Source: Monocercomonoides exilis PA203 (Eukaryota; Protista; Preaxostyla). Taken from it: DNA of 64,000 bases. This document shows positions 20,898 to 43,004 of the stretch, piece by piece. A program made the position numbers and the translations under genes. Position 1 is the stretch's first letter. The number at the start of each line of letters is the position of its first letter. The notes below the pieces were generated by a model, which was given only the letters and a program-made list of their open reading frames with translations, searched no databases and was not told where the DNA came from. The DNA lies in assembly GCA_001643675.2 (NCBI GenBank), contig LSRY02000015.1, forward strand, positions 558,001-622,000, in the 5' to 3' direction.

Positions 20898-23800
20898 TTA
20901 ATATTGAGGTGCTTTGCTTTGTTTCAATATTTTTCTTAGTGTTCTGCGAATAGCAGCATGAATAACATCCAGTGGAATTACGTGACAAGGATTATTATCT
21001 CCTCTTTGACGTGTGTTATAAAGCCAATTAGATGGGAGAAGTGACGGTAAGGGAACAAGTGGAGCAGTAGGGGTGTGTGAAGGCTGTGAATGAACAGGGA
21101 AGGAAAGATGTGGATGGTGGATAGCAGACACAGGAGAGCCTAAAGGTGCAGGGCGATTTAGATGAGCAGAAAGATTGTCTGAGGGAAGAGTTGAGCTGAC
21201 GAACTGAGGTTGCATTTTGAGTGTTTCGATTTCTTTCTCTTTCTCTTTCTCTCTTTCTCTTTCTTTTGCTTTTGAGTCTTTTTCCTTTTCCTTTTGTTTT
21301 TTTGCTTCTTTCTTCTTTCTTCGTTCTTCTGCCTCTTTCTCCTTCAATCTCTGTTTCCTCAATTTCTCCTCTTCTTTCAGCGCTTTCTTTCTCTCTTTCT
21401 CGTTCATCGGTTTCACTCTATCTGCCATCAATGCTGCAGAATCGCTATTAGCAGCAGCAGTAACTGGGAAAGAGATGCCAGCAGTGACAGCACCAGGCAT
21501 AAACACATGATCAGCCGTTTGCACAGGAGCAATACCAGAAACAAAAGCCGATGACTCATCTTGTGAAAGAGATGCTGAAATACCAGCAGATGGAGAAAGA
21601 GATGGAGAAGAAGGAGGCGATGGAGTAAACGAAATAGAAGGAGAAGATTCGGGCAAAGCTGCTTCGCTTGATGCATCATCGCTTGCAAGAAGCGAGCTGC
21701 TGTCGTGTGCCTCTACGGCTTGCATGCCCGCAGCAACTGGTCTCATTCCTTGAGGAATAACAATTCTGGTATCTGACAAAATGGCTTTTGGATTTTCTGA
21801 AAGCATCTGATTTTGATCATACATAGGTGTTTGAGAGAATGAAGAATCACCACTTCCTAATTGAGCAGGTTGTGGCAAATCTCCACCAATCCATTCAATT
21901 TCATCAGAAACACTATCCCAAATGAGCATCTCCAAAAACGTGGGAAGTCGAGAGTTATTTGCAGACGCCAAGTTTCCCATAAAGGCAAGCGAGGCACATT
22001 TTTCAACTGTGTATGGAAGAGAGTCGTTGAACAGCTGGTCAATCAATGCAACGAATTGCCTAGTGTCTTCATCGAACGCTTGCTGCAAAAGTGGCGGAAT
22101 ACCCGATGTGGCAACACTGCGAGCAATCATTGGATAAGATGAGTGAAGAGAGGATTGGAGTGTGCTTGGCGAGGGTGCTGAACCGAACTCTTGCACAGAA
22201 GCCTTCTGGTGCAGACGGAATGAAGAGCGGGAATATTGGCGTAGCTGAGCATTTCGATTCTCGATATCAGATGCGGTGTCAGAACAGACATCACCCATTC
22301 CAGATATCTTTAACAATGGCAGAGCTCGGAAGAATCCGCCAAGAAGAGCGAGAGGTTTGTTTATTGCGTCATCTTCGTTTTCGAATGTGACTGTAGATGG
22401 ATCTGAGACAAAGAAGATTGCAGAGGGAGTAATTGCATGGTGGACGATTGGAGGAGAACATGCATGATGCAAGTGAAGCAGAGCAGAGCTAATATCGAGT
22501 GCAATCTTGAGAATGACAATTGGTGATAGAAGAGGGCCAATGAATTTGCCAGAGGGAAACAATGCTCCGGATGCAAACGCAGAAGTTTCTCTGTTAACGG
22601 GAAGATCAGGTGCAGGCCCTTCTGATTGATGAATAACGGATGGAGGAAGAAGAGGCATTTGTCGTGGCGGATGAAGGAAATAGTAGAGCGGGTGCGGAAA
22701 CAGCGTCTGATATGGAATTGCCTGGAACTGCATGGGCGTTCCAGGCTCCATTCCGCCTGTGCCGTCTGCAAAGCGGTTGAACTGGGAGTGTATTTCAGAG
22801 ACACGCTGCTTCTCTCTCTCTTCTCGTGCTCTTTTCCTTTGGCGTACTTCATCCAGTTTCTTGCTCATAACATCGCATGAAAGGAGTGTTGCATCGACCT
22901 CGCAATAAGGAGAAGGAAGGAGGCCGAAACTGTGGCAGCGCACGATGCATTGATGCTTTATTCTGCTTTGGAGGAAGAACGACATCGTGAAGTCCAGCAG
23001 TGATATTTGACTATTGAGCCCATTTGTTGGCAGGAGTGAAGTTGCAGTGAGTGCCAATCGATTTGCTGTAAGTGAAAGATAATGCCTGTGCTTCAGGCAC
23101 ATTCTTGGCTGTTCTGTTGGATCCATGTGGTGGAACGGGCATGGAGGGAGAAACAGCGACAAATGCGAATCAGAAGTTGAATTCAGAAGAGTTGTGATGG
23201 AATACATTGAAGAAGGCTGATCTTTTTCTTCTTCTTCTTTGTCTTCTGAGCTGATTTTCACAGCTGTCAGAGGATCAACAAATGCTTCACTTTCGTTCAG
23301 TGGATCTGAAAGCACTAGTTCTTGTGATTCTTTGAGTTCAAGTGGCTTGACGTCCTTCGTAATTGAGAATAAAGACGAAGAAGTGGTAGAAGTTTGCTCG
23401 TCTTTAATTGCGTTCAACATCGACAGCATTGAAGACTTTTTGATGAATTTCGTTATTTGCAATGTGAAAGTGTCAAATTCTGTGGAATGTTTTGAAGGGA
23501 ACAAAGAGAATGAATGGAACGTTGATGAAAGCAATGCACCAACGCTTTCAATGGAGTGGATGAGATTACCAGATGAATTAGAAGACAGTGAAGAAATTAG
23601 TTTCAAGCGCGAACCTTTTTGTTGTAATTGTATGCTTATTGTCTGTTTTAATGATTCTTTTTTTGGATCAACATTAAGTGCCTTTAACCCGATTGAAACA
23701 GAATCCAAGAGGCTCCACCAACGATTCAAAGAAGATATGTCCAGCGCCATTTCCAATGAAAATGGTTTCTGTATCTCAGGAATGCATGCCGATAAAACAT

Positions 23801-43004: not shown

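Follow-up and report, generated by a model that had tools for sequence, protein, structure and literature searches.

The question raised by this locus in Monocercomonoides exilis is whether a single, very long open reading frame joins the head of an F-box protein to the remains of a Roco (LRRK-type) protein. The preliminary description of the window, by which we mean the whole stretch of 64,000 nucleotides that was analyzed, had read the frame as an SCF substrate receptor built on a Roco scaffold with dead GTPase and kinase modules, and had regarded this combination as undescribed. The open frames of the window include one at 20898..43004 on the reverse strand that runs uninterrupted for 7368 codons with no stop, and the probability of such a stop-free frame arising by chance at the observed base composition is ~1e-153. 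The predicted product is 22% serine and ~36% low-complexity sequence (Table 1).

A search of the M. exilis genome (82.3 Mb in 101 contigs) with COR-like, kinase-like, and Roc-like queries led to three loci, the window gene and two paralogues, here called C5 and C55, with C55 the most compact. The order of blocks is identical in all three from the F-box through to the C-terminal helix, with ~1800 residues of the giant protein sitting in blocks conserved across all three copies and the inserts outside these blocks differing among the paralogues in both length and sequence. Within the C-terminal half, the blocks shared by the paralogues show saturation at silent sites (pS 0.64-0.86) and lower divergence at replacement sites (pN 0.30-0.57), values that come from blocks chosen for protein conservation and hence from a biased sample; judged by these sites, the comparison shows three copies that are old, constrained, and not decaying. 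One paralogue bears the NCBI title putative F-box and LRR protein (Monocercomonoides exilis). The NCBI model for C55 (XP_067720005.1, 4773 aa) begins only at frame residue 263, which leaves out the F-box and the first LRRs, and its end also departs from that of the frame. No orthologue outside M. exilis was found by word searches or by a search of a 1.84-billion library, tools limited enough that absence is unproven; the sole relative returned by the word searches was the C55 paralogue, with another search swamped by ankyrins, and no orthologue with intact motifs bridging to Roco emerged from the sequence searches. Feature and shape searches of the ESM Atlas gave no usable result.

The surroundings of the gene within the window are varied. 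A TBC RabGAP gene (reverse strand) and an ER-type Hsp90 (forward strand) occupy 14834-20684. The Hsp90 has an extended Lys/Glu repeat and KNEL at its C terminus, and its gene and the giant gene converge tail to tail, with 213 bases between the end of the former and the stop of the latter. Farther away, at 3790-12924 (forward strand), a 3044-codon frame, apparently interrupted by an in-frame intron, encodes at its N terminus a protein kinase in which HRD and DFG are intact (Pfam E 4e-49), and then ~2400 Ser-rich residues without Pfam matches. Upstream of the giant gene there is a perfect (TTA)70 array at 44801-45009 and an (ATAA)41 array at 48407-48579, and beyond these, at 50397-58055 (reverse strand), two consecutive frames of 1817 and 734 codons that are probably one spliced gene, whose product combines a long extracellular part rich in Cys and Asn, a single transmembrane helix, and a degenerate kinase C-lobe that lacks HRD and DFG; it is probably a member of the genome's expanded receptor-like TKL genes. 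At 61730-64000 (forward strand) lies a retroelement in which a gag-like frame (61730-62650) overlaps a reverse-transcriptase frame (62614-63756; Pfam RVT_1 E 8e-30), and a third overlapping frame, from 62535 onward, continues past the edge of the window; such overlap is suggestive of a DIRS-like element.

Table 1. Features of the giant reading frame in the window, with its two paralogous loci
Feature	Residues	Coordinates	Strand	Basis
Single open frame	7368 aa	20898..43004	-	ORF and paralogue comparison
F-box	3-40	42885..42998	-	Pfam F-box (PF00646), 28.9 bits, cut-off 20.5
FBXL-type LRR patch 1	41-275	42180..42884	-	Best PDB match FBXL2, E 5e-30
FBXL-type LRR patch 2	690-732	40809..40937	-	Kept in three paralogues
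FBXL-type LRR patch 3	1179-1265	39210..39470	-	Pfam LRR_6
Ankyrin repeats, four Pfam stretches	1272-1405	38790..39191	-	Ank_2 E 5e-25, Ank E 8e-25
Two more ankyrin-like repeats	1605-1636, 1992-2026	36927..38192	-	Conserved blocks; ankyrin identity by motif only
Conserved helical-looking blocks, ANK-to-LRR interval	2192-2844	34473..36431	-	No credible Pfam match
Typical LRRs	3008-3220	33345..33983	-	LRR_4 E 1e-9, LRR_8 E 3e-9
Roc-like alpha/beta block, putative beta1-beta5	3954-4152	30549..31145	-	Conserved blocks, predicted strand/helix order
Conserved helix block, candidate late Roc helix	4715-4748	28761..28862	-	Paralogue conservation
Three short conserved blocks, Roc end or COR-A start	5133-5324	27033..27608	-	Paralogue conservation
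COR-A-like winged-helix region	5349-5679	25968..26960	-	Pfam, hhalign, and window scan
COR-B-like, first half	5705-5814	25563..25892	-	Paralogue model vs C. tepidum COR, LRRK1, LRRK2
COR-B-like, second half	6192-6280	24165..24431	-	Same fold match
Conserved helical linker, COR-B to kinase	6344-6548	23361..23975	-	Paralogue conservation; no Pfam match
TKL-type pseudokinase	6640-7030	21915..23087	-	hhalign 98.6%, E 1e-15
Conserved C-terminal helix		20916..20972	-	Paralogue conservation
Paralogue C5	5780-codon frame	C5:143016-160355		Genome search
Paralogue C55	5057-codon frame	C55:345262-360432		Genome search

The N-terminal part of the question is readily answered, and by its domain content the giant protein is an FBXL-type F-box protein. 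The F-box that had been proposed passes the Pfam cut-off in all three copies, with 30.9 and 21.7 bits in the paralogues, and the three FBXL-type LRR patches, the roughly four ankyrins, and the typical LRRs are borne out by the matches to FBXL2 and to Pfam, including four Pfam ankyrin repeats. After FBXL2, the next-best PDB matches of the first LRR patch are FBXL17, FBXL5, and SKP2. The two additional ankyrin-like repeats are detached from the others by Ser-rich inserts. The genome also carries Skp1 (three matches) and cullins (four loci).

At the other end of the protein, the presence of a TKL-type kinase domain is certain from profile comparison. With the inserts removed, hhalign gives 98.6% over 184 columns, compared with 0.1% for the reversed sequence, and its E-value is optimistic because the reference kinases were partly picked by similarity. 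Searched against the PDB, a profile of the three sequences returned 14 matches, all kinases, almost all of them plant receptor-like kinases, with MLK4 in addition (best E 0.002), and in the 1.84-billion library it found a paralogue and 25 others, all at the alphaE/catalytic-loop region, those inspected being protein kinases. The lobe had been described as lacking HRD and DFG, and these motifs are indeed gone in all three copies: HRD reads HHA, HHS, or HQA, and DFG reads GFF or GFY (HHA and GFF in the window gene), the position of the VAIK beta3 lysine is a threonine throughout, and both the catalytic and the metal-binding aspartates are missing. On these residues the domain is a pseudokinase, and the catalytic loss most likely predates the duplications. 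The ~340 mostly unconserved residues that follow it gave no WD40 match in the Pfam scan.

Between the typical LRRs and the kinase, two independent lines give moderate support to the COR-like blocks in Roco order that had been noticed, one being a profile signal for COR-A and the other a fold match of a predicted model for COR-B. The Pfam COR-A match in the C55 paralogue has E 0.046, is the second of three matches, and lies far below the cut-off, and the COR-A-like region, which sits immediately before COR-B, matches a bacterial Roc-COR alignment, itself validated on the Chlorobium tepidum Roco, LRRK2, and LRRK1, with an hhalign P of 0.0035. In a sliding profile scan of 53 windows of the three-way alignment, the two best windows start at residues 5280 and 5359 and both correspond to COR-A, scoring 30.4 and 29.8 against a mean of 14.8 (sd 4.1) and a maximum of 24.3 in 60 local shuffles. 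The register is odd: what comes first in the protein is the unit that significantly matches the second winged helix, followed by a block like the first winged helix, which is not significant, and then by a block ending in LWPS. This region (25968-26960, reverse strand) apparently contains three winged-helix-like units rather than two, and COR-A may have been partly duplicated, or the match may stand in the wrong register.

In the case of COR-B, whose two halves are split by an acidic insert of ~375 residues, profile searches gave no sequence match, and the support is structural. A template-free AlphaFold2 model of C55 residues 3450-4110, built from a three-row alignment, is poor overall (mean pLDDT 34), and it packs two segments that are ~150 residues apart in C55 into one alpha/beta domain. 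This low-confidence model aligns with the COR domain of the C. tepidum Roco (3dpu) with Z 8.3 and an rmsd of 2.5 over 100 residues, joint first among 48,161 PDB representative chains and tied with the N-terminal domain of spermine synthase (Z 8.3). A second C. tepidum COR entry ranks fourth (Z 7.9) and two LRRK2 entries fall in the top 20, making four Roco entries in total, and phosphoglucomutase, an unrelated fold, scores Z 8.0. In a second-look fold search, LRRK1 1012-1167, a segment that includes the COR-B loop residue F1065 (PMC10643122), ranks second of 998 (Z 8.1), and LRRK2 1686-1822 is aligned as well. The fold support is moderate because a Z near 8 can, taken alone, reflect a common arrangement. 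PDB matches of the charged segments were rejected as composition bias.

At the Roc-like stretch, the preliminary description found agreement in position and strand order only. The block at residues 3954-4152, which lies after the LRRs and before the COR-like region, is conserved better than anything else in the tail, and its model (pLDDT 43) runs strand, helix, strands, helix, strand, helix, strand, an order that fits beta1-beta5 of a small GTPase. What did not materialize is any significant match of sequence or fold. None of the three paralogues contains a G1, G3, or G4 motif (GxxxxGK[ST], WDxxG, or [NT][KH]xD), Pfam finds no Roc at the three loci, and profile tests of the block against Roc were without a significant match. 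The model aligns with LRRK2 ROC 1332-1460 in the expected register at Z 4.5, a score that many unrelated alpha/beta folds equal or exceed, among them Argonaute MID domains and lumazine synthase, and blocks located hundreds of residues farther downstream would be needed to supply the remainder of a G domain. Because the G motifs are absent, the profile tests are negative, and unrelated folds score at least as high, we infer a Roc ancestry for this block from its position only.

Comparisons of the whole module are consistent with these limits. Run against 33 and 109 prokaryote-type Roc-COR sequences, hmmsearch, hhalign, and block-chain scores did not exceed those of reversed or shuffled controls, and only the order of blocks trends weakly (Spearman 0.49, p 0.03). 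When the giant protein was scanned with Pfam, whole or in pieces, neither Roc nor COR nor kinase was detected. Foldseek used alone gave no significant match for either the Roc-like or the COR-B model. All of the motifs quoted in the preliminary description lie within a few bases of where it had placed them, namely TFVLYDTP at 30929, FFVYVVLNV at 30593-30567, AAMTRWGCF at 26498, VALDSMW at 26324, LWPSRL at 25985, the RLFTF stretch at 25862, HWWKEG at 25691, and IALDISS to PPIVHH at 22505-22413. Chance does not account for these blocks, given that two paralogues keep almost all of them in an identical order, with a single tryptophan of HWWKEG shared. To these the present analysis adds the two paralogues, the two ankyrin-like repeats set apart by inserts, the opening strand of the Roc-like block (31145), the rest of COR-B (24431-24165), and, in the kinase, the N-lobe and alphaF.

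The closest comparators for the overall layout are LRRK1 and LRRK2, which contain ANK, LRR, Roc, COR, and kinase regions (PMC10643122), and the kinase-type Roco proteins of Dictyostelium. The M. exilis protein has the same order of ANK, LRR, alpha/beta block, COR-A-like, COR-B-like, and TKL kinase regions, with the COR-B-like fold matching the LRRK1 and LRRK2 segments given above, but it adds an N-terminal F-box, FBXL LRRs, and a helical linker before the kinase, it is without recognizable G motifs, an active kinase, or WD40, and it is about three times as long, its domains being interrupted by inserts that run to hundreds of residues. Prokaryotic LRR-Roc-COR proteins such as the C. tepidum Roco share the COR-B-like fold and a weak COR-A sequence match, but their GTPase is intact and they lack both a kinase and an F-box. 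FBXL2, FBXL17, and SKP2 resemble the giant protein in having an F-box at the extreme N terminus followed by FBXL-type LRRs, whereas the M. exilis protein continues for ~7000 more residues with ankyrins, a second LRR class, and the COR-like and pseudokinase regions. No other family is known to place a COR-B-like fold immediately ahead of a TKL kinase, and because of this and of the LRRK-like order we consider a Roco origin of the scaffold likely. Nevertheless, we do not class the giant protein as a Roco, since a search for the GTPase motifs that define the family found none of them. The genome contains no canonical Roco detectable with COR-A, COR-B, Roc, and bacterial Roc-COR profiles, these searches matching the GTPase part only and nearly always in short frames. 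The claim that the combination had not been described stands, in that the literature searched contains neither an F-box plus Roc-COR architecture nor a Monocercomonoides Roco, and the main text of the M. exilis genome paper, which counts 320 kinases in a greatly expanded TKL group, mentions neither Roco nor F-box (PMC6759080). The pseudoGTPase domains of p190RhoGAP, which are reported to be GTPase-like, unrecognized in sequence, and non-catalytic in role, offer an analogy only, their architecture being unrelated (PMC5593906).

The explanation that we favor, if by a modest degree, is that the protein is an SCF substrate receptor in which an FBXL head was fused to an old LRRK/Roco-type gene whose two active sites were lost before the gene was triplicated; a receptor is the simplest function because both active sites are gone and the FBXL head is intact. 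The proposal of a receptor on a dead Roco scaffold is supported in its FBXL head, ankyrins, LRRs, TKL pseudokinase, and, moderately, its COR, and its Roc is putative. According to this model, an FBXL head would have joined an ANK-LRR-Roc-COR-kinase gene, with both active sites lost and triplication following. The F-box would dock on Skp1-cullin, as in its family, the Ser-rich inserts would loop out, and the LRR, ankyrin, and dead Roc-COR-kinase parts would fold together as a binding platform that hydrolyzes no nucleotide and brings partners to the ligase, with COR-B perhaps dimerizing the protein as in LRRK2. The protein would then probably choose targets for destruction rather than phosphorylate them. 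A narrower proposal, which we hold to be rather improbable, is that the doubly dead LRRK-like scaffold still recognizes Roco-type partners that are ubiquitylated via SCF instead of phosphorylated; Rab GTPases as such partners are a speculation by analogy with LRRK1/2.

The same ancestry could also have led to a signaling or cytoskeletal scaffold that is no working ligase receptor, the F-box binding Skp1 unproductively or controlling the protein's own turnover. F-box proteins acting outside SCF exist, unconserved inserts make up some three quarters of the chain, and the C5 F-box, at 21.7 bits, barely passes its cut-off, but the F-box and adjoining LRRs rank among the best conserved parts of all three copies, with the first patch 46-48% identical to the paralogues and in the canonical FBXL arrangement, and we regard such a scaffold as a minority possibility. 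Less probable still is a middle region that is not Roco at all, its apparent Roc being another alpha/beta domain and its apparent COR-B another TBP-like or helix-grip domain. The negative Roc and COR profile tests, Z values at the level that the fold-search tool calls common, and the lack of a canonical Roco in the genome searches would all agree with this, and the TKL group, being greatly expanded (PMC6759080), would supply a ready kinase donor; it would, however, require the COR-A signal, the COR-B fold, and the TKL kinase to have fallen by chance into Roco order behind ANK and LRR.

The two remaining alternatives concern activity and gene structure, and each is very unlikely. Strong conservation of the Roc-like and kinase-like parts, whose cores are 42-54% identical between paralogues, and a GKT tripeptide after the first strand in C55 might point to an atypical activity or nucleotide binding that gates substrate capture, but GKT is missing from the other two copies, and the kinase lysine and both aspartates are missing from all three. 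That the frame is instead read as at least two transcripts, or is heavily spliced, so that head and tail are not one protein, would suit the absence of the exact 7368-residue sequence from the public collection and an NCBI model for C55 that omits the F-box; even so, that model has no splice anywhere from the LRRs to the end of the pseudokinase, and in each of the three old paralogues a single stop-free frame of 15-22 kb holds both head and tail.

The protein is known from a single species that is hard to work with, and its GTPase identity is putative. If the Roco ancestry is true, the gene would be a Roco-derived one in an oxymonad, of which none is reported in the literature searched, hidden from annotation by very large inserts. 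It would also represent a natural LRRK-type scaffold that was long kept after the loss of both enzymes, which would bear on the share of scaffolding in what Roco proteins do, and its fusion to an F-box would illustrate a route from signaling enzyme to ligase receptor.
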